Source of the DNA: Pocillopora damicornis
Lineage: Eukaryota
DNA length: 64,000 bases
Direction: 5' to 3'
Assembly (NCBI RefSeq): GCF_003704095.1
Contig: NW_020845867.1
Span: 62,001-126,000, forward strand
In this document: one piece after another, positions 22,595 to 61,436 of the stretch
How positions within the stretch are numbered: position 1 is the first letter of the stretch
How the letters are laid out: every line of letters starts with the position of its first letter
Made by a program: the position numbers and the translations under genes
The notes under the pieces: generated by a model
Databases searched by the model: none
Seen by the model: the letters and a program-made list of their open reading frames with translations, nothing else
What the model was told of the DNA's origin: nothing

Positions 22595-24137
22595 TCATGA
22601 TACATGGTACACTGAGATGTCACTCGTTACATCAGCCACAAATATACTCTCTCTTTGTGAACCAGATGCTATCCAGTTTATCTTGGATCCATGGTTAATT
22701 TCATGGGCAATACCAACAGCACTTGCATTTGCCTCAAGATTGGGCTCTGAGGCACCATTGCATGTACTACCACATAAATTCCAAGTAACAATCCTACTGT
22801 CATCTCCACCTGACACCAATAAGTTGTTTGGGTGAAATCTAGCAAAGTGGACCTGTGTTACACTGGAAGAATGCTTTTTTAGACACTCATCAGGAATAAA
22901 TTTTTTCTTGCCTTCAAACCTGAAGAGTTGGATGTTGCCACTACCTGCAAAGGAAACCTTACTTCTCAAGTTTTTGTCAACAATTAATCATCACAAGGCA
23001 AAGGGTAAGTTGACGAGAGTACTAAAATTATTTAGAGTACTAATTAATTTGACTGTAAAAGTATAAATCTCCTCAACAAGAAGACACGTTCATGTTTTAA
23101 TTCAATTAGTTAATAACTATACACTGTAAAACAACTCACTAGTTATAATGCAATAGATAACATATAGTGTAGCCGATCAGATTGCAGCATATTTTATGGA
23201 ATGCAAGTAGCAATGTACGAATACAAGTTGTCCTTAACATTTTTTGGGTTTTTTTTTTTTTGTTAGTGGATAGAGTTACTGTGAGAGTAAGTGTTTTCCC
23301 CGCAGAAAAATAAAAATTAAAAAATGACCCTACAAGGGGTGAGACCTTAACCCTTTTGCACAAAGACTATAAACTACACCCCCTCCTCCCCCTCTCCCTA
23401 GGAATGTTCAATGCGTTCCTTATGGTGTTTGACAACTAAATTTTGTTGTGCATCAATATATACATTTTTTGAATACCTAGTCCAGCTGCAAACATCCTCC
23501 CATCTCCTGCCATATGAACTGAGTGCACAAAAGGTGGGTTCAGGAAATAAGCCCCTTGATTGCTGTCCTCATCTAGCTCTTGGACATCGAGTTCCTGAAG
23601 TGCTCTCCCGGATGAGAAATCCCAACTGATAATTCTGTAATCCATAGACCCAGACAGTATTTCCCACGGTCTGTTGGGCCTGAACTGAACTGTTGAGCAT
23701 ATGTTATCATTTCTACCACGCAGTGTCTTGAACAACCTTCCTGATAGCACGTCAATCACTTTAATGTCACCGCTGTCATCGCACGCGGCAAGAAAACCGC
23801 CCTTGTAGTGAATAGCTACCTGGTTAATTTCATCTTGGTTAAATTCAAATTCACAAACAGTTGATGACGGATTTCTGAGATCATAACCAAACACTTTGTT
23901 CCTACATGATGCGTATAAACGTTCTGGATTTTTCACGCAAAAGCAGACACCATTGATGTCTTTCGAATCATCCAGCTGGGTCGATGGCGAAGGACATAAA
24001 AGTTTGTTATGAGATGACCCATCTTTTGACCAGACATTAAGTTCTCCTTCACCACCTGAAGCTACAACACCTTCTTTGTTCACGTCTAGTGAAATAACAG
24101 TTGATGTATGCCCACTAGTCCAAGTACTTTTTTGCAT
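22595..24137 (-). CDS. WDR53: WD repeat-containing protein 53-like; exons 24137-23477 and 22944-22595
   Basis: WD40 repeats with WDR53-like segments (FNQDEINQV, LAACDDSGDIKV, NICSTVQFRPNRPWEILSGSMD, LNPPFVHSV, HGSKINW). One phase-1 GT-AG intron joins the two ORFs in frame. Confidence 0.88.
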
Positions 24138-35425: not shown

Positions 35426-38400
35426 ATGGATGATCACGAATTAAACTTTGCGTCTTCCTTGCGGCACGATTCCTCAAGCAAGACCCTTGAGTCGGACTCA
35501 TCGGAGCGCATGAATCGACGACAATCGAAGGTTTCCATCTTTCATTTAGCTGCCTTTGTTTTCGTGTTGGGATTTTGCTTCCTTGTAGCTGGAGTAGTGC
35601 TGATAACTTTGTCTCAAACACGGACATCAGAGACGCAAAAGAACTCTGCCTTCAATCAAACGATCGACAGTAAAAAAAACTACACATTTGGCGAAAACAA
35701 GACAGTCACAGAAAGTCGCTGTGCGTTTTCGTCAGGAGGTCAGCTTGCAGGTAGGTGTCATCTCTGTGACAGATGTCTTGTATTAAAATGTTTTGCCGGC
35801 AGTACCAGTCAACCATCGTTAATTGCTACTGATATATTTCTTCCATCGAGTTGATAAGCACAATAGCCAGCGCATCATTCTCGTGTAAGGAATTTTTTAT
35901 TTGTTCGTTTGCTTTTGGTCATTTATTTTTTCTTCTGCTGAAGTCTCAGATCATGGTCCTCGTGACAGACTATTTTTTTAGGGTAATCGGCTTTTTCGAT
36001 CGTGTTGAAAAGGAGCAAGGAATTTGCCTAAGAGCAAAGCATCTTAAATTTTACTATGATCTAAATGACTTTTAACAATGCTTAGCGGTTTTGTTGTTTA
36101 GAATTCTTGGATAACTTAATCGATGTAAGGAAAATATTGAATTTTAATCTTTTTGATAAAATTCTTTGATTAGTTTTGTGACTTCACTATTTTGACAACC
36201 GTTCGACAAATTTGAGCTTCAATGGCAAACTAACATTCAAGTCATGTCGATGCTATATGGCAATCTTATCAATATTGTCATAAATATTACTGCTTCAGTC
36301 TTACACATTTCTTTTGTGCGGCCTACATAACACATCCCCCGTGTGGCTTTTGGCAAACTTTGAAAACATCTGAATTTCCTATTCCTCGAGCATAGAATAA
36401 TGACTAACTCATATGGAAACGAGAAAGTTGTCCAGCTCCCGATTAAGACCGTTGCTAATTTTGTAATGTTCCAAACTGGTTCTGTGACGTCTCGAGGAAT
36501 TTATAGGAATTTCCTCATTGCACAATCATCTAAAAATATGGAAAAATATGAATTACTACGATTCGCGCTTTCATGGGTCGATAGGTGTGTTTAGACAACA
36601 CGATTATGACGCTGTATAGTTTAATTTAAAAGCGATACAGGACCTTTTTCGTCTTATAATCAGGGACTTATCTGAAGAATTCCTCGGAAGGTATGGAATA
36701 CCAGAGTCAAATAAATGTCTCGAATTATTCCAACTCGTTTCATGTTCAGATGAAGATACGTAAACGAAGCCTGAAAAAAAAAGACGCTCTATTTTCAAGT
36801 TGCGTCTTTCAAGCGAACAACCCCCACCCAAAAAAAAAAAAAAAATTCGATGTCTTTGTTTTTTTGGCGCTCCTCTCATACTTGGTTTACGCCAGGCACT
36901 CGCCTCCTGCTTGCCTCCTTTCGCCTGAAAACGCAAAAAAAATTAAGGTTTGTTACAATGTATACGCGCTATACATTATTTTCACCCTTTTCGTGCATTT
37001 TCTTATTTCGTAGTGTAATAATAACCATAAACTGCAAGTAACTTCCCCATAATGAGTGAAACCACGGTTTCCTCGGGCTTGGCACAACAAGATTTGTTTT
37101 TATATTGTTTGCTTGTTTTTTTCTACGCTTTACCAATGTTACAGTCAGTTTAGTGTGTTTTCTGTCCTTTTTCTCTCCGGTCCCGTAGGTTTAGAGTCAT
37201 TCTTCAGAAAGATAAGAGAAGTACAAACCAGCTTTACACCTTACAAAAGTTACCTCACAAAAGAACAATTTAAACCTTACAACCCAGAGCCACAGGCAGT
37301 CAAAAAGTTAACTGACCAAACAAAGAGACTCTATGAAGAACTGTTGGAGATAAAAGCTAGCTTGGAAGTGGGAAAACTAAAGCTACATGAAAGACGACAA
37401 TTAGCTGTTGCGGAGCACGAATTGAAACATTTCTTCGGGAAACCTTATGGAAACAATTATTATACAGGTTAGCCAAAGTGCACCTCTGTATTCTCTATTT
37501 GGTTTCAAGCTATTGCCCTTTCTTTTTGTCAGCAGGAAGGAGTCTGGTGGCAGGAAAGCCTTCAAAGCGCGTGAAACAATTTAGATAACACTTGATGTCA
37601 ACTCTCCGTTAATCTCCCGTCAATTAAAAAGGAGACCCACGTGCTGGAGTGTTTGGGAGACTTCGTATACTCCATGTCTTCTCCTTCTTGGTTCTTCTAC
37701 TGGAACTGAAGCTTACCAATTGATGAATCATAGAATACGATGAACTTACATTTTCCGTTTGTAAGAAGAATAATTGAAAGGATTACCACCGACACGAACG
37801 TAAAGATTGAACGTAAAACAAAATGGAAAAGAAAGAGTGCCCTCGAGCAAAACCTTACTTTAAGTAATCCTCTTCATAACCGCTCGCTTGGATGCAACGC
37901 AGCGCTCCCTGCTCCCTCCCCCCTAGGAGTGGAAGAGTGTGTTGCTTGACACTCCACAGAACGGCTGCGAGGGAGATAATGGTTTTATTGGTGTAAAAGT
38001 CATTAATCATAATTTGCCGATAATTTCCACTAAGATAACAAAAAAATCTTAAGAAAAGTTTTTCTTTTCGTCGAAAAACTGTTCTTAATTTCTGTATCGA
38101 AATAATCGAATTTTACATGCAAGTAGTCAGAAGGTGTTCATAGTCGTGACTCATATAATTTTTTTTCTCCGTGTCGATCAGGAGCTTGGATGCTGGGTCC
38201 GGGTCAGAGATGCACATTGGAACCAATCGCATCTCTACCTCTTCACTTAAACATAGCCCTTTACATATTTTTAACAAATCAGAACAAAACTTTGAAAGTT
38301 GCAGAAGATTTCATAAAGATGCTACCAAAATTTCGAGAAGGAATCCAACGGTACAAGTTGAACCTACAGAGGGGTGTGACATCTGGAATGATCCGCTCCA

Positions 38401-41400
38401 GAAGCGAGTGTGTCGAGGGTATTGACTGCATGAAAGGAAAATACCGTGATCTTTTTACGCAAAAATCTCCCGAGGCTGTGCTATCCTGGTATAGAGTGCA
38501 CAATCGTATAGAAAACTTTGCGAGACACGTAAAACCGCAAGATTTATCTTCGTGGATTGAGAAGTATGGAAAAAATATGTCCGACTCTCTAACAAACAGT
38601 GTCGTCAAATTCATCGGAATGCCAATGGTCAGTTTGTTTGATTATCTCGAAAATGATCACATCTCACACTGCGTGCCTGACAATGTATCCAGTGGACTGG
38701 GAACAAGGCCCGTTGATCACGTGTATATCAACGGAACAAAGACGTCAATCAAGACCAACCAGACATTGGATGGTAAAGAGAGGATAATGAAAGGGAAAGA
38801 TGCGTATGCGGAAATTGTTTCGTATTTCACCACAACAAAGTATACACCAGGCAAGTAGTGATTCTGAAAATTATGATATCAAACTAGGGGACTGGGGGAG
38901 GGGGAGGGGGAGGGGGGAAGGATTATTCGGGTTGATTGTACTTGTGTCACAACAAAATCTGCCTGNNNNNNNNNNNNNNNNNNNNNNNNNNNNNNNNNNN
39001 NNNNNNNNNNNNNNNNNNNNNNNNNNNNNNNNNNNNNNNNNNNNNNNNNNNNNNNNNNNNNNNNNNNNNNCCCCCCCCCAAAAATCTTTCGACCCCTCCC
39101 CCCCGGCGATAGATTTTGACTGGTCTTTATGTGAATGGTGCTCACCATATCAAGATCATTATTTTAACAAGACAAGCAACCATAGCAAAGGTATGATCTA
39201 TGAGATAGATTTTTAAGACACGTTTTAGCCATCGAGAACTCAAAATGAACCGTAATCTAACCTTCTCCGATTCCAACGAATAGAGCTTACCTCAAGCTGC
39301 AGTGGAAACTTTTTGTTTTTTTTACAATTAAGAGCTACTCAGAAATGTCTTAAGTCATAAACTTCTGTCATGTCAAACGTATAGCCATGTTAGTAACATG
39401 GACTTCTGTTGTTTCTGTCAGACGAGGTGCATGACCTTGGATGGAGACAGCTGACAAGGTATCACCAACAAGCTGTAGACATAGCGAAGAAGATAACAGG
39501 TCAAAGAAACGAAAGCGAGGCTGTGTCTGAATTTAAACGCCAGTTGAACTCTTTCGCGTTTTGCATCAACAAGCAGCCTTTTCCCGTAAACGAATCGGAC
39601 GAGAAAGCATTTCAGAGGTGTAAAAATGATAAAGGTTAGCACTATCAAAATCCAGAATCAAATTCAGATCTTCCATAACATTATTATTAAACTACGCTAA
39701 TTTACACCCGTCTTTTCTGTTCATTCGCAGTGATAATGTATAGGAAGATAAACACTTGTAATGACTCGTCGAAATACCCTTATCGAAGTCTTTTCAAGTT
39801 GTTTGATGAATTCTTAAAGTATTGTTCTTGACAGCATTTTTGTATTTATTTGCCTTTCATTCTTTTTTGATCAGATGCAACAATTTATTGTCCTCAGCGT
39901 TATACCGCCATGTCCCACTGGATGGAAACTGTTCGCAGTACAATGACATTCTTGCGAGGCAAGCTGCTCAAGCTGTTTTACTTCAATGGCGACAGAAGGA
40001 CGATACCAACTTGCCCTGATGAGCCGGTAATTAGTTTTTCCCGGTACGTTGGCGTGGCAACGCATACGCCATCCGTCGGTGACTGTCGACGCACAGCCAG
40101 GTACAACTTGCCATTTTTCGTCGATCGAATGGGGTGTAAGTACATGGAATGGACTACAGCTGTACATGAGGCAGTTCCTGGCCATCATCTTCAATCCGAG
40201 GGCTACAAGGCAATATTCCAGCCCCGGTAAGTGCGCAATAGATGGACCTCTCTCCTGATAAACGGCGAGGCTAACTAGTAATCATTTGTTTGCATGTAAT
40301 TGGGCCCTTTTGGCCAACTAAACAAGAACAAGATACCTTTCACTTTAGAGAGGAACTATGAAGACTTATCTGTTCGTTCATAGGAGAATGAAAATCATAT
40401 CCTCCTCTATGAAAGAGATCTGTGGTTTGGTTACACACTTTGGATTAATTTTCAAATCTTCTTGCACCACATAAAAGGAGTGATCAGAAACTTCTGGTTG
40501 AATTGGTTTAGCCTACGGGCTGGCCCTTAGTATTCGTGCTTCGGCACGAGCGTTTCTTCGAACGCGGGTAAATATGAGGCCTTGAGCAACGGGAGGGGTC
40601 TAGAACTAATAATAAAACCTCATTATTAGTGCCAGATTCCTGGCGAACCTTTCCCCGACTCGTCTCAAATCTACCCGGTGGCGGAGAAACGCGTGTCTCG
40701 CAGCGCTAACAGTTAGGGTCTGCTCATGCGCTAGATTCGGATGGCAACACACTGGAGTTCAGTAAAAAGACTTCAAAGTTAGAACTATATTGCTGAGATT
40801 AAACAGTTCCGATCACTGAATGAAGGGGGTAAATTTGTAGAGAAACTGTGGTGCTGCGTCGGTGGGAGAGTCTAACAGGGTAATTAAGTATTTTCAACCG
40901 AATTGATAACGTAGATTGGCCAATTAAGAGTTACAGACCTGACGTTTCGAGCGTTAGCCCTTCGTCAGAGGTCAGTATCTGCTCATTAGAATTGTCACTC
41001 CCCACATCAATGTCAGAACCACCTTTTACTGTGCAATAAACATTATCATACAGAAGAACTGCCCAGTAGCTTTCATTTAAATGACCCCACAAGGTTTGAC
41101 CCACAGGCGCAAAAGTCAAACCATTTCATTACACATCTAAATGTTGCCACTATAAAGTTTTGTCGGAAAGCTAAAGCTACATTATACAATATCACAAATG
41201 GTAACCAATGAAAGCAAGTAACGTTCGTCTCTGTCTTTATTTTATCATTTGAAGGATAGCACCTTGTCCAAGTATATTAAAACCAAGTCCAATTATGGCT
41301 TACAAGGAAGGCTGGGCGACTTACGCTGAACATCCCCTCATGAGCCTCGATTCAGGTAACATCGATTTTCAGTTAGCAGTTGTCTGTGAAGTTAGTTAAG

Positions 41401-42544
41401 TCCGTTAGTTAGTGCCATTTTTAACTGAGTGTCTAAAGTAATCCGAGATTACGCTTGTTTTGCTTTATTCGCTCTGCGATTGGTCCAGAAAACTCGCGGC
41501 ACGCCCCTAACTAATTGGATGCAAAACTAACATCAATTATGACTTGGTCACTCGCGTTTTCCCGCGCTTCAAGCGGTTTCAGTGATTGAGTTTTCATTGG
41601 TTCTTCAAGGCATTTTCCTCTTTCTGATTGGCTGTTGTAGTTTCTTTGGTTTTAGTTTTACGACGCTCAATGTAAAAGTGCTCTAAAGTGTTATTCTGAT
41701 ATTGGCCCCGCATACAAGGTTCAATCAATTTTACTTGAAGAAAATCATTGATTCAGTATGATAAATAGATCTTAGTTACTTTTTAGTTAATAATTCATAC
41801 ATTTAAACCTTAATGCCTTCACATCAAAATACATATTCTCTTTAATGTTCTCTATACATTTCCTACCGTATTGAGAAGGAGAATTTATTCAACAGTTAGG
41901 AGCTAATTGGTTGGCGATCACTTCCTGCAGTCTCATGCACATGTTAATGTGTGATTTAGCGGTAGGACTGTAAGGAGAAATCAGATGCTAATCACTTCCG
42001 GTGTAAAGGGTAAATCTCTTAATAGTAAACTTAGGAATTTCAATCCATCGACATACCTCCTTAATAACACGACGCTTTGCCTCTTTTCTCTCCTAGATCT
42101 ATACGCAGAGCAGCCACTACGCTATTACGGGGTTATAAGATCTCAAATCTGGCGAGCACTACGCCTCGTCATCGACACGGGTCTACATTACAAGAACATG
42201 TCACGTAATGAGGCATTGACCATATTTAGACAATACATGTGGGACAACAGCGACATCGTACGGAAAGAAATTTCTCGTTACCAAGCTTGGCCTGGTCAAG
42301 CGACTTCGTACATGATTGGCCAGTTGGAGATATGGAGAATGCGCAATGAGTCCGAAGCAATCCTTGGATCAAAATACGATATTCGGGATTTTCATTATCA
42401 CGTGCTCTCGCAAGGCAGTATGCCCCTATGGTTTCTCGATGAGCACATCAAAAAGTTTTATGTTCGCTGTGTTTTGTCTGGAGCCTCAGAAGACGATTCG
42501 GAAAGGTGTTTCGGCGATTTCGATAAAAGAGGATTCTCTAGGTC
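35426..42544 (+). CDS. DUF885-family putative zinc metallopeptidase, type II membrane-anchored, paralog 1 (3' end in gap); exons 35426-35750, 37189-37467, 38182-38850, 39422-39634, 39875-40226, 41255-41355, 42097->42544
   Basis: N-terminal TM (IFHLAAFVFVLGFCFLVAGVVLITL); HEAVPGHH at 40165-40188; AYKEGWATYAE near 41300-41330; C-terminal WRALRLVIDTGLH, EISRYQAWPGQATSYMIGQLEI, DIRDFH...VLSQGSMPL, typical of DUF885. Confidence 0.88.
38885..39127. mobile_element. MITE (AGGGACTGG...TGACTGGTC ends), partly gapped; related copy at about 56345-56622
   Basis: G-rich left arm and C-rich right arm; the right end GATAGA...TGACTGGTC is shared by both copies. Confidence 0.5.
40820..40973 (-). mobile_element. 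Penelope-like/retrozyme-type repeat fragment carrying a hammerhead ribozyme
   Basis: On the minus strand the hammerhead is followed by ...TCTCCCACCGACGCAGCACCACAGTTTCTC; a second decayed copy lies at 29885-30005. Confidence 0.6.
40936..40973 (-). ncRNA. Minimal type I hammerhead ribozyme
   Basis: GACCT-CTGACGA-A-GGGC-TAAC-GCTC-GAAA-CGTC-AGGTC: 5-bp stem I, CUGANGA, 4-bp stem II, GAAA, palindromic ACGT stem III, GUC cleavage triplet. Confidence 0.8.
41415..41686. mobile_element. CCAAT-rich MITE, same family as 21488-21768
   Basis: Shared interior and right end ...CTCAATGTAAAAGTGCTCTA. Confidence 0.7.
41803..42014. mobile_element. piggyBac-type MITE (degenerate)
   Basis: TTAAACCTTAATGCC...GGTGTAAAGGGTAAA; interior resembles 49411-49607. 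Confidence 0.6.
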
Positions 42545-43511
42545 NNNNNNNNNNNNNNNNNNNNNNNNNNNNNNNNNNNNNNNNNNNNNNNNNNNNNNNN
42601 NNNNNNNNNNNNNNNNNNNNNNNNNNNNNNNNNNNNNNNNNNNNNNNNNNNNNNNNNNNNNNNNNNNNNNNNNNNNNNNNNNNNNNNNNNNNNNNNNNNN
42701 NNNNNNNNNNNNNNNNNNNNNNNNNNNNNNNNNNNNNNNNNNNNNNNNNNNNNNNNNNNNNNNNNNNNNNNNNNNNNNNNNNNNNNNNNNNNNNNNNNNN
42801 NNNNNNNNNNNNNNNNNNNNNNNNNNNNNNNNNNNNNNNNNNNNNNNNNNNNNNNNNNNNNNNNNNNNNNNNNNNNNNNNNNNNNNNNNNNNNNNNNNNN
42901 NNNNNNNNNNNNNNNNNNNNNNNNNNNNNNNNNNNNNNNNNNNNNNNNNNNNNNNNNNNNNNTTCTTCTCATGTATTCAGTTTTCTAGAGTGAACGCTGT
43001 CTCCAATGAGAACTTAGGATTTTTACAACAAATGAATGACCACTTATGCGGAGAGAATAAAGTTAACCTCTTCGGCAGACGTCACGTCGAGCAAACACTT
43101 TTCCACTCTGTTGACATGCATTGAAAATTGATGAATCATTTCGCCATTTTCCTAAAGAAAGAAAGAAAGAAAGAAAAGATCAATTTTTACGCTCGACAGA
43201 AGTTTCGCGAGCATCTTTTTTTTTGCCGTTTTTGACTCAATTTGAAAATTAGAGACTGAACTGATCTTTCACCGAAACAAGCTTACTGTGCATGAGTTCC
43301 ACTTTTGTTATTCAAATAATTTATTTAAATAAACTTCACCCAATACTTGTTTTTTGTAAAATTCATGCTTGAATGATACTGATAAAATTTACATTTCAGC
43401 TTTCTTTCTCGATGCGTGACTGAATACCATACAACTGTAAAACGGTATCGGTAATCAATTTGTCAACTGAAGCCCGCAAATTCTGTTTGCAGTGGTTTGC
43501 AGACATCTAAG

Positions 43512-46500
43512 ATGGCAGAGATCGAAGCTGGGCAAGCATTAGCACCTGGATATTCAGACAAAATTCAGTACGAATCCGCGACAAAAAAACGCCACAAGCT
43601 ATTCAGAGTTAAACGAAAGACAGCTTTTGTGATTGCAGCTCTCATAGCAGTGCTGGGTTTTATTTTCTTTATCATAGGTTTGGTTCTCTTAGTGAAGAGT
43701 CGTAGCGCCAAATCTGAGACACATAAAACAAGCATTGAGGGAGACATCCGTGAAGATGATGAGATTGCAAAGTGCGCATTTTCAGCCGAGGCAAAGCGTG
43801 TAGGTGAGAGTACAATATTGCAATTTGTGAGCCGAAAATGCTAGTGCAACTGAAAGATTCTTGCAGGAATTTAAACAAAGCACATGTTATATAAGCTCGG
43901 AGATTGTTCGGGGAAGCAGCCAACAGATTTCTTATTGCTCCTGGTTAAGTTAGTCTCCCACGCAGCCTCTTTAGAGACGTTCCCTTACTCCTCCCCTCTT
44001 AAAAAAATAACTGCTGCGAAGGAGACCATTATTATTCACAATCACCAGCTGCGAACTAAAATGATTTTTGACAAATGCACCACTTAAGGGATTATTTAAC
44101 TTAATATGCGCTGAGCAACCAGCCGTGACCAATGGTGTTTTACATCACTGTGTAGTACCTCATGTCAGAGGACTGAGGAGAAGTCATGGATGCAATAAAC
44201 AAATTGACCTTTTCGTCGTCATTTACCTAATATACTTGCTGCTATGTAAAATCTAAAGAAAATTTTTGCCGAGACGTTCCAAAAGAGCTCTCTTTGGGAC
44301 CACCGCTTCACACTTCCGGCTGAACCTTACAGACCGTAACTCCTTGAGAACCAAGTGTTTATAACGTCTTGTTCTGACTGTACTGACTGAGACATACGAG
44401 ACGATGGTTATTTCACCTTATACTCAGAGTAGAGAAAATTACGAGCTTCTCCAAATGACGTCCAAAGTTGGTTTAACGGTTCACGCTTTACTGGGTCCCA
44501 TTCTCCACACTGGCGTGGTAAGCTTTAAGCGCAACATAAACCAGCAATTTTCGACACATGAAAATACACGCTAAAAGATCAAATATTCCTTTATGTTCTT
44601 TTACTGTCAGACAGAAATGGTCATCTTTTTCCTGTCGTTCCATACAATTTCGGTGTATTTGCTCTCTCCTTGCGCTTATTAAATGTTTACCCTAAATTAA
44701 ATTTATATTATTTTGTTTCAGGTCTCCTTGACTTTTTGAAGAGGATTGATAGTACCGTCCGTGAGCTTCATCCCTACGATGCTCGTTTCATGACAGGAGT
44801 CTCCATTGAAGATAAGAAAAAGATATTCCAACCATATAACCCAACCCCGGAGAGTATCAAAGCCATTTCTGAACGCGCGCATTCTATGTTGGAGGAGTTG
44901 GGAAGTTTAAAGATCGACAAGAAGCTTCTCCTTACACGTGAACGGCGCATGATCGCTAAAACGCATCATTTCTTGAAGCATTACTTCGGGCGGCCTTTTG
45001 AAAACAATTATTTAGCCGGTAAGTTTGGATTGAGAGAACTGAGTTACACCGTATTTGGTAACGTTTTCAGAATACCAAGAATTATTTTTTCGCAAAGGAA
45101 ATCTTCTAGAAGGAGCGTTTATTAGGTGTCCAAAGACAAATTGATTTATCGCAAAGTGTATGTTAACACTTTCAGAATGCCAAGAGTCGTCTCTTCGCGA
45201 TGGAAAATCTTTGAGAAGGAACGTGCATTAGTGGTCCAAAGACAAATTATAATAAACCATAGTGCAGAATTTGCGTAGTGTTTCAAATGTTGTCAAAAGA
45301 TCAATCTCTGAATGCTTAAATCGATTTCATGACGATCACAGAAAGGGTATCTGTTTGGGTCTCTCGCTTACGAAGCTCTTTACAAAATTTACCTTCGCTA
45401 TCCTTCTATACCGTAGGGAAATTTCACACTAGAAATGGTCAAGTGTATGAACTCCGAATTCCCAGTTCGTGGTAAAACATCACCTGATAACGATGCAAAG
45501 ATTTTTTCAGTACCTAGGCTCTTCGTGATATCGATACTCGTCTGTGGTTCATTCTTCGACTGATTTTTTCTAGGTTACTGGATGTTGGGACCAGGCAGGT
45601 ACTGCTATCGGACTTTCAAGGGCATCACATCTATCAAGCAACAGCTCACCACCGTATTTCTCCTTTTCGCTCCTAAGACAGCGTCTGAACTGGAAGCAGC
45701 TTTGAATCTTCTCGCCAAATTCAAAACCGGGATTAAACAGTTCAAGGAAAACTTGAAAAGCGGGATTCGAACCGGTATGGTAGGGTCCGTCACTGTGTGC
45801 AAAGAAGGAAAAGAATGTCTAGAAGACATTTACATTGAGGTCTCTTCGCAGCAATCGGGCCGCGGAATCCTGACGGCTTTTCAAGATCAAATTTCAACCT
45901 TTGTCTCTGAACTAAGCTCCCACGAGGCTGCAAAGATTATGGCAAAGCACGGAATGAATGGTGCTGATGTTGTGGAGGAGAGCCTCGTTCGTAATGTTGG
46001 ATCACCGTTGCTTGATTTATTTGAGTACCTTCAGAATGAACACTTGTCACACTGCTTACCGACCAATGTGTCAAGTGGACTGGGTACGTTGCCTGTCAAT
46101 CATGTCTACCTCAACGGGAGTAAAACCTTGGAGATGACAAATCCGACTTTCAGAGAAGGAAACACGGTCCTACCTGGAAAGGAGTCTTACAAAAACTTCT
46201 TGTCTTACTACACAACACAAGAAATTACACCAGGTAACTGAAGCAAATCAAAAAAGAGAACCCATGCCCCAGGAAAGAAGGAAGGATTTTTCACTGGGGG
46301 AAGGGAGGGAGGGGGATATTTTACACCAGCATCTTATTTGAATTCGGAGCATACCAGGATGTATCAGTCTTGATGGTACTGCACATATTCCATTATAGAT
46401 AAGGAACAATCACATTAAGATTCCCCTTAAGCTGGAATGGCTATCTGTAGGTATTAGTGGCGTTGTTTATAAAAGAAACGTTGCTTGAGAAAGGTGCGAT

Positions 46501-48529
46501 GCAGTTAATCGAAAATGGTGGCAGTTGGGGTGTGTTAAAAATTTAGTAACCTTCTAGCCTGATATCGATTGCGATGATCTCCGCGTGATCTAAACTACTT
46601 TACATAAAACTGGCGGAACTGACGGAACGCGGTGGTGCCGCGGTGGTGCTGCGGTGCCGCTGCGGTGGGGCCACGTCCACCTCGTTTGTATTCTTCACCT
46701 TTAGTCATATCATTAGCGTTTTAACCTTCAATATTTCAGTTGAAGTTCAAGATTTGGGCTGGGAGATGTTGGAGAAACTTTACCTACAAGCGGTGGATAT
46801 TGCTAAGAAGATCACCAAACAGGACACGGAGGAGATAGCTGTAAATCAGTTTACAAAATACCTCAACTCGACGGAAATGTACTTTAATGAAAACCCTTTT
46901 CCGGAAAATGAATCTAATGAAGAGGCCTTTCGCAAATGCAAGAGTGAGGAGGGTAGGTAGCATGCTAGTTGACATAACATGCAAGAAATTCTTGTTTTAC
47001 GATCATGCGATGACGTACACACATGCTCGAAATGTACCACCGTGTAGGGAATTATTTTCCTTACTTACATGTTGACGATTTTTTTCAGCCGCCCAAATCT
47101 ATTGTCCACAGCGTTACAAAACGATGTTAAAATGGCTGGATTTGTCACGCAACACCATTTCACGCCTTCTGCCAAAATTGACAGATTTATTTTACTTCAC
47201 TGGAAACAAGACCACCGTTCCCACCTGCCCAGTTGCTATGGAAATATCATTCAATCCCTTACAACCCGTGCAAAGTTATTCTACGAGTGGAAGTTCATGT
47301 CAATCGCCCAGCAAGTACAAGGTGCCCTTCTTTGTTGATCGAATGGGGCCAAAGTACTTTGAGTTCACAGTGAATGCACATGAGGCTAGCCCCGGACACC
47401 ATTTGCAGTCTCAGGGATACGTAGAAAACTTCCGGTGAGTGTAGAATTTGGCTTAACTTAATTCGTTTTCTCTAGTTATTACTCCCGAAAGGAACACCNN
47501 NNNNNNNNNNNNNNNNNNNNNNNNNNNNNNNNNNNNNNNNNNNNNNNNNNNNNNNNNNNNNNNNNNNNNNNNNNNNNNNNNNNNNNNNNNNNNNNNNNNN
47601 NNNNNNNNNNNNNNNNNNNNNNNNNNNNNNNNNNNNNNNNNNNNNNNNNNNNNNNNNNNNNNNNNNNNNNNNNNNNNNNNNNNNNNNNNNNNNNNNNNNN
47701 NNNNNNNNNNAGGAAGTAAAAGGGTTGTAAATCAGAGGTGGGGGGTTGCTGAAGTAGCGAAAACTATTTGATGAAACTTGCTCAAAACTGACACTCGTTG
47801 CTGTTGCAGAGATGCATGCCGGGAAGGCGTCAATTTTCAATTCCTAAAGGATATTACAGGAATTGCCATTAGAGAGGGTTGGGGTTTATACTCCGAGAAT
47901 CCACTAGCAGCACAGGATACAGGTCAGTAAGCAATCATTGAGTTGTCAGCTATCCAAAGTAAGTAACTCAATTGTAGGTGTTTTTTTTTTCATTCTTCGC
48001 AGATCTATATCACAACCGTATCCTTGAACGTTACGGTGCTCTCAAGGGTCAAATATGGCGCGCACTTCGCCTCATCATAGATACCGGCCTCCATTCTAGG
48101 AACATGACGCGAGAAAAAGCCATAGATCTCTTTCGGCGTTATATGTGGGATTACAGCGACGTTGTTCCAAACGAGGTTAGTCGATACCAGGCATATCCGG
48201 GACAGGCGACCGCCTACATGACTGGTCAGCTGGCAATTTGGAGAATGCGCAATGAAACTTCAAAGAAACTCGGAGCAAAGTTCAAAATACAAGATTTTCA
48301 TTATCAAGTATTGTCTCAAGGCGAAGTTCCAATTTCATACCTTCAGACCCATATTGAGGAGTACGCCAACTGTGTCCTGCATGAAAGAGGCAACGGTTGT
48401 TGGGATGCTCTTACTGTTGTTAACGAACAAGAGCATTACGGACAGACATCTGCAATAGATGAGCAACAACAGCGGGTAATACGAGAGAAATTAAACCAGC
48501 TATATCCCGCAGACTCTTGTATATTTTAG
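43512..48529 (+). CDS. DUF885-family putative zinc metallopeptidase, type II membrane-anchored, paralog 2 (complete, 815 aa); exons 43512-43803, 44722-45018, 45574-46233, 46740-46952, 47089-47434, 47810-47922, 48003-48529
   Basis: Exon lengths sum to 2448 nt (816 codons). TM AFVIAALIAVLGFIFFIIGLVLLV follows basic RVKRK; HEASPGHH at 47379-47402; EGWGLYSE at 47874-47897; WRALRLIIDTGLH, EVSRYQAYPGQATAYMTG, IQDFH. Confidence 0.9.
45060..45250. repeat. Imperfect ~108-bp tandem duplication in intron 2 of DUF885 paralog 2
   Basis: TTTCAGAAT(A/G)CCAAGA...AGAAGGA...TCCAAAGACAAATT occurs twice. Confidence 0.7.
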
Positions 48530-49607: not shown

Positions 49608-52600
49608 ACGATTAATACTTTTAAGATTCGCAAATCAAAACGATGTCTTTTAAACCTTTTAACTGCAGGCAAAAGTTGGAAAATACAGGGTTAACCCAGC
49701 GTTTGAAAAGTGTTAAACTGTGTGTATCAGAATTAAAACCAAGCATGGCATAACAACATAAGCAATCCCTTACAGCTTTTTAAAATTTATTCAGTTAGGA
49801 ATTGTAAAGAGCACGAGGAAACGTGCCGGTCTTTTTCCGTCTGATTGCTTTTAGTTTTACAAAAAGAAGGGGTTTATCAGAGCCAATCATATATCAAAGT
49901 AATTATTCTGGTTGTGGATTAAAGGGATGATGGAGGGAGGGGGAAGTGAATTGTCTCGTAAATCCATGCAGCTATTTCTAGTCTTTATAAGAAAAGTGGG
50001 CCAGTATTTTGAAGGTTTTAGCATTGAAATAATGCTGACTGGCTTACATGCATGCTGCAATGTTTATCTGTACTTTCTGAAGTTTTCTTAGCTCGGCTTT
50101 TATCGATGTCTTCAAAGGTTTACTTTTCAACGAGGAAATTTGTTTGTCTCTTTCAAAGCCTATGTTTTTTCTACACGCATCATGTGTTAATCCACCTCAT
50201 AGACGGATTAACACCGGCTCAAGGAAATTTTCCAAACAGCTTAGTCGAGAAACGAGACTGTGGGTCTATTTTGAAAGTCTCTGAAACAGGATTTTTCGGC
50301 CTGTGAGATTTTGTGAAAAATTCTCGGAGACCGTTTCTAAGGGGGATATCTTTCGCCATCCTTAGATTAGAAGGTGAGAAACGTTCTTTTGCGAGAGATT
50401 TTTGGTTTCACTCCTGGCGAGGAAAACTGTTTGTTGTCACTTGTTTAAAACATTAACGAGGTATCTTGCCAAACAAAAATCTGTACGTGTGTTGACGTTA
50501 TTTCGCTATTCAGCAAAATTATAAGCCATTCTTTGCGGATGACTTGGTTCTTTTTGCGATAATACAATGACACTACCCAAAGTTTAACATTTATTTTATC
50601 AACTAGCAACAACACACTGAACTTATACACTCATTGAATACAAACATTAGCGAACGCTATGTGTTTTATGCTAGTGAAAAATGTATAGGAATTCTTTAAA
50701 ATAAATATGCGTTCACCTGCATTGCGAGTTATCTCAAAATAAATCATACATTAGCTGTACACTCGTCATTTCTTGAATTGCTTTGACATTGAGTTCGTCC
50801 ATAGGTGAACGAGACAAGTCAATAGTTTTCCGCACTTGACTGTGGGCTAAATCATAAAATTCAGCACAAAAATAAGTTGGCTGAATTAGCCCTCCGGCAT
50901 CGCCTTTCAAAATGTTTTTTGCCTATATCTGCCAATTTTGCTGAAAAGTTAGTCCTCCGTGCCTACCCAGAAGAATGAGAATTGATGTAAACTTTTAATA
51001 GCGAGCTGATCGAAGATTTTCAATCTTACCCGAAGGCAATGCGCTCTAATCTTTTCAAATTTGTTTACCATCCACGTCAGTGTCCTTTCTATTCTTTTTC
51101 TGCTTTCTGTCAATAATTGTAACCGTCATCAACAGAATTGCTGTGTTCCTTTCGTTTTACCCATTTCAACGCCACTACAAATTGTGAAAACAATCAGTTT
51201 ACCACCCAGAGGCGACTTTTTCAAGGGTTGGTTCTGAACATCTAAACAACAAGTCTTCGCTAAAATAACCCATAAATCATGGCAGAGTGAAGCACGGAAA
51301 ATCACCGAAAATATCAAACTTAATTGAAGACGAACTCTAAATGTAAATTTAGCTCTCCTAGCCGGCAGTTTTGAATAACGAAGCCGCAAGAGAAACGTGC
51401 TAAGGAAAGGGAAGTTGCTTGTTTTGCCGCACGAAGTTTCACCGCCTTTTTTTTGTTTCGACAATTTCCTCCGAGTTCTCTCGGCAGCAACTGCTGGTTA
51501 AATAGAACTATGTTCGGGAAAGGTTTAGGAAAAACTCACGGACTTGGTAAAAAAGCCCGAGGGAATTCTAGAAGCGACGGTGCATTTTCACTCTTCTCCA
51601 AATTTATGGTCTTTAGAAGGGACATTTCTGTGCTCAGAACATGCTTTTTGGCATTTCCGCTACGATTGAGACACATCTATCTTCGGCGTTTTCGGTTAAA
51701 ATATTGCTACGGTAGTTTTCAGGAATCCTGACTAATGAGAACAACACTCATTTTAGAAATTAAAATGTGTTTTGCAGCGGCAGGAGATGAGAACAAACAC
51801 AGCAGGCCCCTGCTTTTTCGATTATAGTAGTCCGTTGTTACAAGTACACCTGCAGTCTTTACGTTAAAGGTTTTTCTTTTCGGGGAGCATCTATTTTGAC
51901 AGCTTGTGCGTCGAACATCAAAATAAAATGATATAAAAAAATCTAATGATAACTTAGAACGGATTTGCATGCAAAGAAATAAAATCAAATAATTTGATTT
52001 CTGCGAATTTTACAGTGCATCACGCTTGTAAGAAAATTAAACTGATTTTTTGCGTAGAAAAAAACTTAAAATTTTAATTGTTGTGATCCGAGAAAGGGCA
52101 ACAGTGTTAAAAATTTTACGATTGAATATTAAACCATTGCAATCAAAATTTGAACATATAATCATTTAGATCAAGTCAAATAAAAGGCGATAATTTTTAC
52201 AAATTTGACAAGTTTAGAACAACAGAACGAGGCGTCAAGTAGTACTTAATCAAAATCTGCGTTTCGTGTGAGACCTGTCTGAAAAGCGAAGAAAGTAATT
52301 TTTCGGAAGGAGATATTCTGTCATTATTTATACGAATGCGTCTATTGGTTGCTAAGAATTCACGTGACCGCCGTAGAACGCGACAGAAATTATCCTTTTG
52401 TGATTAGCCGTACAAAGGAGGCAATTAGCACTAAAAATGCCAAGTGCAGGGAACATGGATCTATGGAATCTATTCACGGTTATGAATATGCAGAGAAATT
52501 GATGTCAAATCGACCAAGAAGTGTTTACCGGCACATCACTTGCGATTTCTCATTCCTCGGCCAACCTAAACAGGATGTAGCAAGCATCGGGGTTTTGCGC

Positions 52601-52687
52601 AGGAAGAAAAAAATCGCATATTATCCGAGCGTGCTTTTTTTTTTGGCATTTTCAAGTCTCACGCCGGCGGGAATCCTCAGCTTTATA

Positions 52688-53911
52688 ATGGAGCCAAACA
52701 ATGGTGTTAAGGTGAATGTTGGTCGCGTCGTAATCAATGTAAGCGGAGCGATCTTCGAAGTAAGCGAAAGCAAGTTGCTGCATTTCCCTCAGTCGCTACT
52801 GGGCTGCCCTCAGAAACGGAGCAAATATTTTGACTCTCAGCGCGAGGAGTATTTCTTCGATCGTCACCGACAAGCATTCGAGGGTATACTGTTTTACTAT
52901 CAAAACGAAGGGAGATTAGTTTATCCGGACAATGTGCCATCAGAAGTTTTTGATGAAGAAGTTAAGTTTTTCATGCTCCCCGTTGAGCCAAACAGCTGTG
53001 AGAAGTTGGAAAGGGTTATACTCGGCGATTACAACCGCTCGCGTCCTCTGAATATTTGGCAGAGGACACTCTGGGAATTGTTTGAGTTTCCCAATTCATC
53101 GCTGGCTGCAAAAATTCTGGCAGTTCTCTCGCAGGTGTTTATTATCGTATCTTTAGTAGGTTCTTGTCTGAAAACTGTCGAATCGCTTCAACCAGAGCGT
53201 ACCAAGGTGATAGAAAACTTTCAGAACCATAACAAGTCTGTTTACCGAGATTTAACGCCGTCTGAGTTACATGACGATGACTGGTTTTCATTCGATCTTG
53301 TTTGCTACAGTTGGTTCACCTTGGAGTGTGCTGTGCGGTTACTCGCGTCCCCAAACAAAAGCGAATATTTCAAATTGCTTCCGAATTGCGCAGATTTTGC
53401 TACGATCTTGGTTTTTTATTTGGAACTCATTGTGAAAATGGCTTGGCCCTCGGCCACCGTGGTGGTCCGTTTACTGGAAACTTTTGCGGTCATTCGAATA
53501 TTAAAGTTAGTACGATACTGCGAGGGAATGAAAATCCTGGTTATTACTGTCGTATCAGGCATCAAAGACCTAGGCCTTTTGGTAACGTTCGCCACAACCT
53601 TTGTTATTTTGGGCTCGAGTGCGGTATTTTTTGTAGAACTGAACGAGCAGGATGATAGTGACTTTAAGAGTATTCCCGATGCATTTTGGTGGGCGATAAT
53701 AACAATTTGTACAGTTGGTTATGGCGATAAAGTTCCTGTCACAACACCGGGAAAGTTTATGGGGGCTATCTGCGCTGTACTTGGTACTGTAACAGTTGCT
53801 CTGCCTCTGTTCCGCTTCGCTGCGCATTTTCGCACGAGTATCGAACACTCCTCTTACATTCTACCGCGTCGCGATAGAAAAGTTTCTTCTTCGAGACGAA
53901 AAAGTCGATGA
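52688..53911 (+). CDS. Intronless Shaker/Kv1-family potassium channel subunit, probably a regulatory (silent) subunit, ~407 aa; in-frame upstream ATGs at 52463 and 52502 make the start uncertain
   Basis: T1 domain (VVINVSG...EYFFDRHRQAFEGILFYYQNEGRL), LWELFEFPNSSLAA, six TM segments, pore FKSIPDAFWWAIITICTVGYGDKVP. S6 has PLF instead of PVP. Confidence 0.9.
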   Translation: MEPNNGVKVNVGRVVINVSGAIFEVSESKLLHFPQSLLGCPQKRSKYFDSQREEYFFDRHRQAFEGILFYYQNEGRLVYPDNVPSEVFDEEVKFFMLPVEPNSCEKLERVILGDYNRSRPLNIWQRTLWELFEFPNSSLAAKILAVLSQVFIIVSLVGSCLKTVESLQPERTKVIENFQNHNKSVYRDLTPSELHDDDWFSFDLVCYSWFTLECAVRLLASPNKSEYFKLLPNCADFATILVFYLELIVKMAWPSATVVVRLLETFAVIRILKLVRYCEGMKILVITVVSGIKDLGLLVTFATTFVILGSSAVFFVELNEQDDSDFKSIPDAFWWAIITICTVGYGDKVPVTTPGKFMGAICAVLGTVTVALPLFRFAAHFRTSIEHSSYILPRRDRKVSSSRRKSR

Positions 53912-56659: not shown

Positions 56660-59600
56660 TCATTTTGTTACCATTGACTCTCCCTTGCCAGGCTCCAAGA
56701 TCGCTGGCATCGAAGGAAAACAGCCCGCGCTCGAGTCAGTTTTTTGGGTAACAGATTGACACTCCGAATCCAGACAATTAGCATGTAGTCGTTCATTTTT
56801 GTGTCCTGCCTCTTGCTGACATGTACAACGTTTGTCCGGAGCGATGAAATCTAACTCACTGTTCACTTTTAATTCTGTGAATGGGTTCTTTCCCGTAGAG
56901 TTCATTCGGTTGGCAGCACGTTCCAACTTGGGCGAGTCCTCCACTATTTCGCTATTCTCTGGAGTGGCTAAGAGTATTTTTACGTCATCTTTTTTTTGTT
57001 CCTTCAGGAATGGCACTTTGAACTTGCTTTTTTGTTTCGGATTCTTAGCAGATTCTTCTTTACTTTGCTCGGAACAGGTTGGATTGTCCTCATCGCTCTT
57101 AGCGTTCTCGAGCGCAGAGAACGAGGTTTCCATTGAGTCGCTGCCTTGCCAGCTTGATGAATCCCCGCTGGTCCTCTTTAATATTCCTTTTTTAGGAAAA
57201 GGAGGCCTGATACCTTTTTCTTTAGTGCTGTTAAGTGTGAATGCAACAGGATTTGGTGATAGATCTTTAATTTGCGATCCTCTCTTTTGATCCGAGACGT
57301 TATCGTTCTCTTTGAACGCTAGCAATGGAATGTCTTTACCTGTTGGGGAGGAGGGTTTCGATTCCATTGTGCGGGAATGGGGTCGGCTAAAAAACCTTCT
57401 TTGACTTTTTCTCGTTTGATCGTTTGCACAATTTTCTCCATATGAGGCGTCCTTGAAGCAATTTTCACGCGCATTGTCGACATAGTTGCTTCTATGTGCC
57501 AAGAGACTTTCGTGCGACATAGTGCTTCGCTTGTGGATTTTGCTTCCTCTGTCCTTTGCCAAAAATTCTTTGATTATTTTTCTGGCATCTTCATCTGGTC
57601 TTTCTTGTCTCCCTCGTTCTGCGATGGCAGCCACAATCTCTCGAGGATTCGTAGAGTTACCATTTTCTCTTCGGAATCTGCTGGCTAGAGCTTTAACTTC
57701 GTTTTTGGCCTCAATGAGTGACAGGCGACGCTTAAGAGTTTCCTTGTCGGCCACAAGCCATTTACGAGGGTCATGCCCCTGAAGGCGGGAGTCTTCAGCT
57801 GCAGGGAAATAAAAAGAAAGACAAAGGCAATTTTGTCATCTGAATCGGAATCTAGAAAGTAATGAAACGCTCGGCTGCAACACACTGCAGGCGTCATTCA
57901 CTTTCCAGTCTTTTCTGGTGATTGAACTTGTTTCCGCGCCAGAAAACCGTGGACTACAGCTTTCATGTTCAACAGTCCGGAATTTCTCATCATATGATCT
58001 GACTAGTCACCAATTGGAAAGCTTACTACAAGCTAAGGCAAACCAGGAAAACCTTAACACAGAAAACATTCGATGCGCTCAACATCTTTCAGAAAGTCAA
58101 ATCAGCAAAAAACATGTATTTCAGTTACATTTGTGTAGTCAGTCTGCTTAGTAAGACATTTAACTTCATTTTTTTCAAAGCCAAATCATGACGACGTAGC
58201 TCTGAGAACGAGTAAATGCTGGATGAACCTGCAAGCATCGGTTTACATTCCTCGTTTTGATCATATCAAATGATTATATAACTCCGAAACTTTGCGTAAA
58301 AATATCGGATTTACGTCAATTACTTGGCCACAGGTTGCAGAGCGCTCTAACATGGCGAGGATGTTGTGTATTTAAACGTTTGACACGGTCATAAGAGAAT
58401 CAGTTTTCCTTCAACAAAAAGGCAAAATGAGGTTGGTTTGAAACAATGCCTAGAGGCTCTAGAGATTTTTCTCTCAACTTACTTAACTGATCCTTGTCCA
58501 AGTCGTCATTTTCTACTTTTTGATTCATTCTCTCTCTCCGCTGTTTCTCGTACGTCTGCCGAGCGATTTTCGCCAGTTGTTCTTTCTCCTCTGGGTAGAA
58601 CGCGAGGACCTCCTCTAGATCAGCCTTCGATAGTCGGAAAAGATCAGAGAATCCTACCGAACGAACGGAAGCAGTCCGACGATTTCCAATCCCTTTTATG
58701 TCAAGAATACTTATTTCTCCAAAATGTCGACCGGCGGAAAGTTTCGCTAGTGGTGCTCCCCTCTTGTCAACAACTGCTAACTCGCCTTGATTGACAATGT
58801 ACATTTCACGCCCTATTTCATCTTGACGACAAACATAATCTCCTAGAATTGATTAAAAAAACAAAATCATAAACAGAAACGAAAGACAACACATATCAAC
58901 CGAAGGCTAGAATCCAAATTCGAAAACGCATCTTTTTGGTTTAAATGTGAAGTGCACGGTCTTCAATTTTGCGCAGAACACCTTTCACTTTTTAAACCAA
59001 TCATAGAGCAGACTTAATCTAATCGTGCGGATTCTTTCGCGTGCACGCGAAATTTTCCCGCCCTTGAACCCAATCACATATCCATAATCTGAATTCCTAA
59101 TAGTTAAAAATGTCTTATTTCTACTTTGCATGATACGGGGGAGCGTTACCTGGGGAACATAACATGGGCTTCAACTTTAAAACGAGCTCGCGCAAAAAGC
59201 CTGGATCGCAGTGTTCAAACATCTTCACTTTCTTCAGTGTGTCCAAGTTGACGTGAATGGCAATTTCTGCGCGAATATTGTCGTTTAGTTGTTGAAAGAG
59301 CTCCTCCTCACTCATATCTTTCTTGTTTCTCCACGCAAAATCAAACCACTGAATGACTCGCCGCTGAAGATCCATCGGTAGTTGATTAGCCGCGATATAC
59401 TCCTTCATTCCATCCAACTTAAGATAAAAAGGTATAATCGCATTTAATAAGAAATAATTTGCAGTGAATAAAGGGATAAAAGGTCTGCTAAATTTCTCTC
59501 AGTATGTACCAGAGAGATGAAATGCTAACGTTGTATTTTAGTAATGAGGGTCAAGACTCAGTGAGACGCCTGCTTTTGTTGGTCATTAAATCTAAGTTGA

Positions 59601-61436
59601 GGAATAGACAGGGATGTCATCTTTAGTTATATCTCTAGATTAATTAAGGAAATCCACAAGAGTAACACACGAAATGACATAAAAAAACGGACAATCAAAC
59701 AGGGGGAGACGGACAAAAAGGCGGAGAAAGAAAGAAAAATAAACAGATCATGAAAGACAGAGAGATAGAGAAGTTAGGCACTCACAAAGAACATAGTCTA
59801 AGAGAGAAAGAGAGAAAAACAAGAACAGACAATAAGGAAGGTAGGCTAGCCGCTCGTAGAAAGGACACGCGTAGAAATAGGACAGTCAGAGATCAGATGG
59901 ATGCACTGACTGACAGATTAAAAAACGGGACACATGTTTGAAACATATGCAAAAACGAAAGACAGAGAAACAGACAGTAAGACATACATGGACACAGTCA
60001 AGGAAACAGATAGACAGAAACAGACAGATAGATAAAGGGTACAGGTTTTTACCCTTTACAGTGGCCAATTTACGTTTTCAATTCAGTTGTTAACACTAAA
60101 TTACCAGATAAAGGGTAAGACGGACAGTCGGAGACAGACAGACAGACAGACAGACTGAGAGACAATAGAACCATAAACAACAACAGACCTTCCTATGGTA
60201 TTTCTCTCGATGTCTCCTGAGATCAACAATCATATCTGCCGCGTTACCTACAATGGTAGCAAATATCAGAACTCCACATAGGTACGTGAAGATACAGAAC
60301 ATTAGGCTCATGGTGGTCTGGGGCGAGACCTGTTTACCTGTGCCCACTGTTGTCATGGATACCAGTGAACGAAACAGGCTGTAGAGATATTGAGGACCGA
60401 CCTGAAAATGGGAATAGAGAACACTCAGTCTCGTCTTGTGACAAATTTAAAGTCGCCATGATAGATTGAGCATAGGAATTAAGCACATGTCTTTACTCAC
60501 CTCTTCCCACTGACCCTCGAGCTTGGGATGAAGCCATTTGTCAGCTCCAAATCCCTCCATATATGAAAGAAGAAAGTAGAAACAAGCCACCCAATGAATA
60601 ATCAGAAACAGATAATGAATCTGCTTCAGCAGGTTAAACAGCTTGGGGCGACCGCTGTAGATCTCAACGCGATCGCAAAAGAGAAAAAGTCTGTGCGCCT
60701 TAAGTAGCCGACCAAATCGCAGAGCAGGCCTGGGACCTAACACCAGAAAGAGGAGGTCGACTGGTAGGATGGAAACGCAATCCAGAAAAAAACCCCGAGA
60801 TTTCATGTAACGTTTGGCCAGTTGTTTGGTATCTGTGACTATCTTGCCGTCGAGAAAGTACCCTGTGCGAAATTGCACTATGATGTCGAGGAGAAATACG
60901 AAGTCACAGCTATAATCGATCGCCATGAATGGTATTACGAACTTCTGCTCTCGTACGAAAAAAGCCACGCGGAAAATAATCATCCAGTAGTTGTACAAGA
61001 TTCCGAGAACGACCACGATCAGCCAGAAGAAGTACAAGTCCCCTGAAGGGTCAAACACCAGCGTACAATTGCAGCTTGCCTTGTCAAGCCGCGCATCTGA
61101 TGCGTCGCGAGAACTCCCCGTCCCCTCCGAAGTGGGGCTCTGAACTTGGGGTGAATTTGAGGCTGATCTGCGCATGAGTGGTCGGCGCCAGTCCCTGTCT
61201 TCTTGATATGTGCCGGTGTAGCGCTCGAGCCAAGAATCACGTGATCTTCTGCCAGTTTTCTTGTAGAAACGTTGCATTGATAAAACTCTAAGCACGGAGC
61301 TCGCAAATCGCGTCTGTCCTGTGGATTCAATGACCACCCTGGGGATTTGTGGGCCGGTGGCCTCTCCTTGACCAGATCCATGATTCACCTCGGTCTGGGA
61401 ACTATCGTCTGGAGTTAGATTCGTCGGCCGTTGCAT
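56660..61436 (-). CDS. Cyclic nucleotide-gated channel subunit (CNGA-like CNBD, atypical pore), 971 aa; exons 61436-60501, 60401-60189, 59417-59150, 58842-58483, 57798-56660
   Basis: [33 protein letters not shown]-linker [37 protein letters not shown]...FGEISIL...[24 protein letters not shown]. Exons total 2916 nt in frame. Confidence 0.9.
59680..60180. repeat. Degenerate (GACA)n / purine-rich simple repeat in CNG intron 2
   Basis: GACAGACAGACAGACAGAC at 60132-60153 and scattered GACAGA/GATAGA units. Confidence 0.7.

Follow-up and report, generated by a model that had tools for sequence, protein, structure and literature searches.

The presence of two intron-containing, apparently membrane-anchored members of DUF885 (PF05960), a Pfam family named as bacterial, side by side on contig NW_020845867.1 of the coral Pocillopora damicornis raises the question of what such proteins might do in this animal and how it came by them. 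The window analysed here is the 64,000-nucleotide stretch from 62,001 to 126,000 of that contig (assembly GCF_003704095.1), and positions are numbered from its first letter. The two genes, G1 (35426 to at least 42544) and G2 (43512-48529), are expressed tandem paralogs of an old hexacorallian subfamily, itself part of a Cnidaria-wide DUF885 family. Their products are probably membrane-tethered zinc peptidases that cleave short peptides extracellularly or within the secretory lumen.

Open segments and splice sites read from the sequence place both genes on the plus strand, with seven exons apiece and the same series of intron phases (1,1,1,1,2,1). G1 codes for at least 795 residues and G2 for 815, the latter ending with a TAG stop; the two proteins are about 45% identical. 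Exon 1 of G1 (35426-35750) carries the start codon, cytosolic tail, transmembrane helix and stalk, and ends at a phase 1 donor (CAG/GTAGGT). Exon 2 (37189-37467) can be aligned with sea-anemone homologs, and exon 3 (38182-38850) covers DUF885 profile positions 84-232. Exon 4 (39422-39634) measures 213 nt, as do its equivalents in G2, Nematostella P0260 and Actinia P0251. HEAVPGHH lies in exon 5 (39875-40226) at 40165-40188, EGWATYAE in exon 6 (41255-41355) at 41307-41330, and RALRLVIDTGLH (42153-42188) and RYQAWPGQA (42276-42302) in exon 7 (42097-42544), whose frame runs open into an assembly gap. In G2, the coding part of exon 1 (43512-43803) is followed by exon 2 (44722-45018), exon 3 (45574-46233, supported by profile match and RNA), exon 4 (46740-46952), exon 5 (47089-47434, with HEASPGHH at 47379-47402), exon 6 (47810-47922, with EGWGLYSE at 47874-47897) and exon 7 (48003-48529, with RALRLIIDTGLH at 48059-48094, RYQAYPGQA at 48182-48208 and the stop codon at 48527-48529). 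All splice pairs are GT-AG except for intron 3 of G1 (38851-39421), a GC-AG intron with a strong consensus donor (CAG/GCAAGT). The corresponding site in G2 is GT, and no frame-keeping GT donor was found near the GC site of G1. Exon 6 of G1 was also suspected of being short or of carrying a frameshift; this was dismissed, since the acceptor at 41253-41254 yields an intact exon with the conserved Cys and the RNA carries the joint 40226/41255.

RNA contigs from four runs, each from a different study, were compared with the segment 39950-45949 of the window. The G2 joints 43803/44722 and 45018/45574 appear in all four runs, with 255 letters on either side. In three runs, the G2 contig continues for exactly 1134 letters past 45949 before cross-matching exon 7 of G1 at 42275. 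This length equals the sum of the rest of G2 exon 3 (284), exons 4 to 6 (213, 346 and 113) and 178 letters of exon 7, which confirms, in sum, that introns 3 to 6 of G2 are removed as modelled. G2 transcripts begin near 43404-43429. G1 RNA is found at lower depth: its joint 40226/41255 occurs in two runs (X1 and X10), a contig end falls at 40226, and contigs also cover exon 7 (42095-42394). Both genes are thus expressed and spliced. Transcription assignable to G1 extends to at least 43146 and, given the start of G2 by 43404-43429, the two genes lie less than about 260 bp apart. A first-pass annotation of this DNA had proposed two spliced seven-exon paralogs with identical phases, arisen by tandem duplication; the exon and splice reading agrees with this structure, the joints in the contigs of four studies (40226/41255 being the one seen for G1) document the splicing, and the duplication is likewise supported. 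Separately, contig depth within introns 5 and 6 of G1 (40750-41149 and 41350-41749) exceeds exon depth by a factor of hundreds to thousands. The RNA concerned consists of many partial contigs with loose ends, and these look like copies of interspersed repeats that are highly expressed rather than parts of the gene.

Three assembly gaps fall within the locus. The first (38966-39070) lies in intron 3 of G1; nothing coding is lost there, as exons 3 and 4 abut both in the Pfam profile (position 232, then 233) and in the homologs. The second (42545-42962) interrupts the last exon of G1 about 30 residues past the end of the domain with the frame still open, so that the C-terminal tail and the stop codon of G1 are out of sight. 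RNA contigs run into this gap, and transcribed sequence is back at 42963-43146. The third (47499-47710), in intron 5 of G2, conceals no exon, since the RNA length between the anchoring matches equals the summed exons; the alignment with the Stylophora ortholog P0263 is also continuous across it. A gene pair from a family named as bacterial could conceivably stem from bacterial contamination or an assembly artefact. This is scarcely credible for genes whose models have six spliceosomal introns each, whose splicing is seen in poly(A) RNA from four studies, whose orthologs in Nematostella and Actinia have the same introns, and whose neighbours are animal genes (for transcription factor DP, a WD40 protein, a Shaker-type Kv channel and a cyclic-nucleotide-gated channel).

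Membership in DUF885 was assessed exon by exon, using the Pfam gathering score of 32.4 bits. The exon matches of G1 and G2 are collinear with the profile (positions 75-232, 233-283, 288-381 and 416-532), and two exons score above the cut-off in both genes: 142.2 bits (G1) and 134.1 bits (G2) for exon 7, 34.9 and 36.2 bits, respectively, for exon 5. P0263 of Stylophora pistillata (gene LOC111320683), 85% identical to G2, served as the full-length stand-in for profile and fold comparisons. It contains a single DUF885 domain at residues 96-716 (247.5 bits over profile positions 19-532). The motifs HE..PGHH, EGW..Y.E, R..R...D.G.H and RY...PGQA are all present in G1 and G2. Their columns are invariant or nearly so in 90 aligned sequences from cnidarians and bacteria, in which E544, P547, G548, H549, E583, G584, W585, Y588, E590, D625, R659, Y670 and G673 never vary, and G1 and G2 keep every one of these residues.

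The AlphaFold model of P0263 (mean predicted local distance difference test score, pLDDT, 91.7; predicted template modelling score, pTM, 0.89) closely matches the solved bacterial DUF885 structures, with Z scores of 37.9 for 3o0y (563 residues aligned), 30.8 for 3iuk and 28.0 for 3u24, and Foldseek E values from 1e-10 to 1e-19. These three proteins, from Colwellia (a lipoprotein), Arthrobacter and Shewanella, belong to the same Pfam family, keep the invariant motif residues and have the same fold over 514-563 residues (Z 28-38). Identity to them is only about 20%, and a cytosolic tail, a signal anchor, a stalk, two Cys-rich inserts and spliceosomal introns are extra in the coral. The matches listed outside DUF885 are all gluzincins: MATCAP (12.8), the M32 carboxypeptidase BsuCP (12.8), oligoendopeptidase F (11.9), neurolysin (10.9), M1 aminopeptidases (near 10) and angiotensin-converting enzyme (ACE, about 8-9). 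These lower scores fit the placement of DUF885 by Pfam in the Peptidase_MA clan (PMC12572635). The first-pass annotation had assigned both genes to DUF885, quoted the four motifs and expected a zincin-like fold. The profile scores bear out the first, the motifs stand intact at their expected places in both genes, and the fold is recovered on the P0263 model, not on spliced proteins of the window itself. Of the structural relatives it had named, M32, M3 and M2 peptidases were matched weakly, the strong similarity being to the solved DUF885 structures.

The resemblance to M32 (the Taq type, with BsuCP, 3hq2) and M3 peptidases (PepF, neurolysin) concerns the two-lobed helical gluzincin shape, with Z scores of 10-13 over about 285-375 residues, and the position of a Glu-bearing helix downstream of the His motif. 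In the P0263 model, that helix would be 579-594, which carries the invariant Glu of EGW about 35 residues past the His motif. The differences are also clear. M32 and M3 enzymes have a canonical HExxH on one helix, whereas the helix of the coral HE-x-x-P-G-H-H is broken; and they are soluble cytosolic or organellar enzymes, whereas the coral proteins are predicted to be membrane-anchored. ACE and ACE2 (M2) are membrane-anchored ectoenzymes of the same broad fold class (Z about 8-9), but they have a canonical HExxH and no detected sequence similarity to the coral proteins. Their anchor, moreover, is of type I and lies at the C-terminus.

In G1 and G2, 36-40 polar residues, basic near the membrane, precede a hydrophobic run of 22-24 residues. 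The helix of G1 (residues 41-62; 35546-35611) has a mean Kyte-Doolittle value of 2.78 and four Lys plus Arg residues on its N-terminal flank versus two on its C-terminal flank; for that of G2 (residues 38-61; 43623-43694) the values are 3.2, eight and four. A stalk follows, disordered in the P0263 model, and the DUF885 domain of about 700 residues then begins with a conserved Cys-x-x-Ser-x-Glu-Ala. Past the helix there are 12 N-glycosylation sequons and 14 Cys in G1, 7 and 13 in G2. Two Cys-containing inserts of about 30-35 residues occur in the cnidarian proteins and are absent from the bacterial sequences in the alignment. From its sequence, this layout is predicted to be that of a type II signal anchor with the domain extracellular or lumenal. 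The short basic N-terminus, single transmembrane helix and type II anchor of the first-pass annotation are thereby retained, and so, as a prediction, is the neprilysin-like layout it proposed. The likeness to neprilysin and ECE (M13) comprises the short cytosolic N-terminus, the signal anchor and the large glycosylated, disulfide-rich ectodomain, and is an analogy of layout only: the catalytic fold of those enzymes is unrelated (thermolysin-like), and no M13 chain figures among the 50 entries listed in the fold comparison or among the Foldseek matches listed. Searches of Pfam with P0263 also gave no match to M32, M3 or M13.

These elements can be assembled into a working scheme. The protein, with some 36-40 residues of cytosolic tail ahead of its signal-anchor helix and short stalk, would be inserted N-in/C-out (type II), and its DUF885 domain would be exposed at the cell surface or to the secretory lumen. 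The domain would be a two-lobed zinc metallopeptidase of the M32/M3/M2 kind, admitting only short peptides. The His residues on either side of the P-G break and the EGW Glu might bind zinc, and the HE Glu might act as general base.

The same helix and stalk could instead belong to a shed or secreted soluble enzyme, in which the helix serves only for targeting and the stalk is cleaved to release the domain into the gastric cavity, mucus or nematocyst/venom fluid. Disorder marks the stalk, with pLDDT <50 at residues 29-38 in the P0263 model, and Aurelia P0054 opens with what resembles a signal peptide, in place of an internal anchor. DUF885 proteins of about 600 residues abound in a spider venom proteome (PMC7682650) and figure among putative venom components in the gland transcriptomes of a snail (PMC11359391). 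These animal members, set against the coral proteins by published description, likewise have no assigned function (PMC7682650, PMC11359391); they are shorter than the coral proteins, and the spider one comes from secreted venom and was likened by its authors to M32 (PMC7682650). Release of the domain seems quite unlikely all the same, as a helix of 21-24 residues with basic flanks, starting some 30-40 residues from the N-terminus, is the usual pattern of an uncleaved signal anchor, and it is conserved in 109 of the 129 family members surveyed (those of at least 600 residues).

Several points weigh against a membrane-tethered zinc peptidase. Hydropathy and charge rules are the only basis for topology and localisation, and the modelled fold is that of the Stylophora ortholog rather than of the proteins of the window. 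Gluzincin Z scores of 9-13 between helical proteins may mirror general architecture only. A canonical HExxH on a single helix is absent: the motif is HE-x-x-P-G-H-H and, in the P0263 model, the helix leading to H-E stops there and the next one starts with H-H. The NCBIfam search returned no match and no named model, and our literature search found no demonstrated activity for any protein of this very large family, three structures of which have been solved. Furthermore, where G2 and nearly all family members have the first His of HE..PGHH, P0263 has a Leu (residue 543, aligned with window 47379-47381). Either Stylophora has truly lost a putative zinc ligand here, or the sequence or its annotation is wrong. 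Variant motifs occur in 10 of the 129 members.

The Leu of P0263 keeps alive an alternative in which the proteins are catalytically dead and the zincin scaffold is retained for ligand binding, as in a binding protein or receptor. The members with altered motifs point the same way, and the big lineage-specific expansions in tandem arrays resemble those of recognition families. In a paper that mentions DUF885, Riemerella OMP76 is described as binding a host protein (PMC10281475). We nevertheless regard this alternative as unlikely: G1 and G2 retain all residues that are invariant from bacteria to Cnidaria, and the presence of both core motifs (HE..PGHH and EGW..Y.E) in 119 of the 129 members argues for selection on the catalytic site. 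The tethered zinc peptidase thus stays the reading that we consider probable. If the proteins are indeed surface zinc peptidases, they become candidates for the inactivation or processing of peptides in animals with nervous systems that depend heavily on neuropeptides. The roles in neuropeptide processing, digestion or symbiont interfaces offered by the first-pass annotation are conjectural.

How far does this architecture extend? The closest relatives of G1 and G2 are all cnidarian and include Anthozoa, Hydrozoa and Scyphozoa, with soft corals represented beside stony corals and sea anemones. The genera are Exaiptasia, Actinia, Actinostola, Nematostella, Acropora, Montipora, Oculina, Stylophora, Porites, Orbicella, Pocillopora, Dendronephthya, Xenia, Hydra, Clytia, Sanderia and Aurelia. 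The P. damicornis genome holds about 30 copies of the family, many in tandem arrays, one of which, on another scaffold, comprises a dozen or more copies. A protein atlas contains one cnidarian cluster plus bacterial clusters, and NCBI and UniProt already list family proteins as uncharacterised or "DUF885 domain-containing". Searching the literature with PF05960, locus names or DUF885 plus coral turned up no account of the cnidarian members. The G1/G2 locus is an ordinary pair within a large family that is annotated but undescribed. The first-pass annotation had pictured a bacterial-type enzyme recast by one animal at one locus; this does not hold, given the anchored architecture of the 109 members and the number of copies in this genome alone. 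Rather, Cnidaria expanded a membrane-anchored, disulfide- and glycan-rich DUF885 protein into dozens of copies per genome.

Within this family, G1 and G2 are set apart by their introns. These lie at about residues 56, 155, 375, 446, 561 and 599 (ortholog numbering). Nematostella P0260 and Actinia P0251 have seven exons, with the six positions and phases as in G1 and G2, and a third P. damicornis gene has the same pattern. Genes with these introns (G-type) form one hexacorallian clade in the tree. The six introns thus mark an ancient hexacorallian subfamily and not merely a recent duplication. In the main family (A-type), introns lie near residues 252, 305, 392, 468, 553, 616 and 632 in the same numbering, positions common to Nematostella P0017 and P0249, Hydra P0174, the coral paralog P0104 and other P. 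damicornis copies. G-type and A-type genes do not have a single intron position in common. Two ancient subfamilies that share fold and architecture and no intron position offer a clean case for the study of intron evolution.

In the best tree, the G clade is nested among lineages with A-type introns, suggesting that the old introns were all lost, for example through a retrocopy, and that six were gained anew before the split of sea anemones and stony corals. The approximately unbiased (AU) test did not reject a topology in which the G clade is sister to the remaining cnidarian members (p-AU 0.117), so that the introns may instead have been gained independently from an intron-poor ancestor. One intron of the A-type Nematostella gene P0017 (locus L016, 8369-10253) contains a tandem array whose units, 80 bases in period, each repeat the first 15 codons of the next exon.

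In trees of the wider family, the cnidarian DUF885 clade is monophyletic. The first-pass annotation had suggested that the genes may derive from an ancient horizontal transfer. A bacterial donor could not be identified: the clade has a very long stem, with about 1.9 substitutions per site to either side of the root, has no particular bacterial sister and does not join the chytrid and red-algal DUF885 proteins. Members of the family are patchily distributed in other eukaryotes, with reports from arachnids (PMC7682650), a gastropod (PMC11359391) and Dictyostelium (PMC3188802). The eukaryotes placed in the trees beside cnidarians are chytrids and a red alga. In the first tree, the red-algal protein P0101 and the chytrid domains are sisters; used as a query, P0101 matched algae and bacteria and no animals. 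Of two sequences taken at first for non-cnidarian relatives, P0104 was rejected as such, being a coral paralog, and P0052 was traced to plankton metatranscriptomes with no source organism specified. On the side of these comparisons, chytrid fungi and an Amycolatopsis species were seen to have proteins of 1100-1700 residues with two or three DUF885 domains in tandem (P0002, P0003, P0009, P0011 and P0021), the chytrid and actinobacterial ones aligning over their full lengths.

Horizontal transfer into the cnidarian stem is at most possible on these sequence data, because of the long stem without a donor and the occurrence of DUF885 in other eukaryotes. One may envisage a single ancient transfer from a bacterium to a cnidarian, in which an intronless founder gained the anchor and the Cys-rich inserts, duplicated early and acquired introns independently in the two lines. 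All named members of the clade are cnidarian, it stands apart from the other eukaryotic DUF885 proteins in the tree, and the next matches are bacterial, at 27-34% identity over partial length. A founder without introns would also explain why G-type and A-type genes have no intron position in common, and the tree with G as sister, which accords with this course of events, is not rejected. We entertain it tentatively, as a possibility short of even chances: no bacterial group appears as sister across the long branches at the root, other eukaryotes including arachnids and a gastropod have the domain, and the nested G clade of the best tree favours replacement of introns in a family that already had them. 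That all parts should hold together, namely a single intronless bacterial acquisition, two intron sets gained independently and products that are Cnidaria-specific surface zinc peptidases, appears unlikely. If true, the two intron sets would be a preserved record of intron acquisition by a transferred gene.

The other genes of the window are ordinary animal genes. They include an exon of transcription factor DP (6271-6747, plus strand), a WD40-repeat protein gene (23439-24137, minus strand), a single-exon gene for a Shaker-type Kv channel with T1/BTB and ion transport domains (52349-53908, plus strand) and a cyclic-nucleotide-gated channel gene (58403-61436, minus strand).

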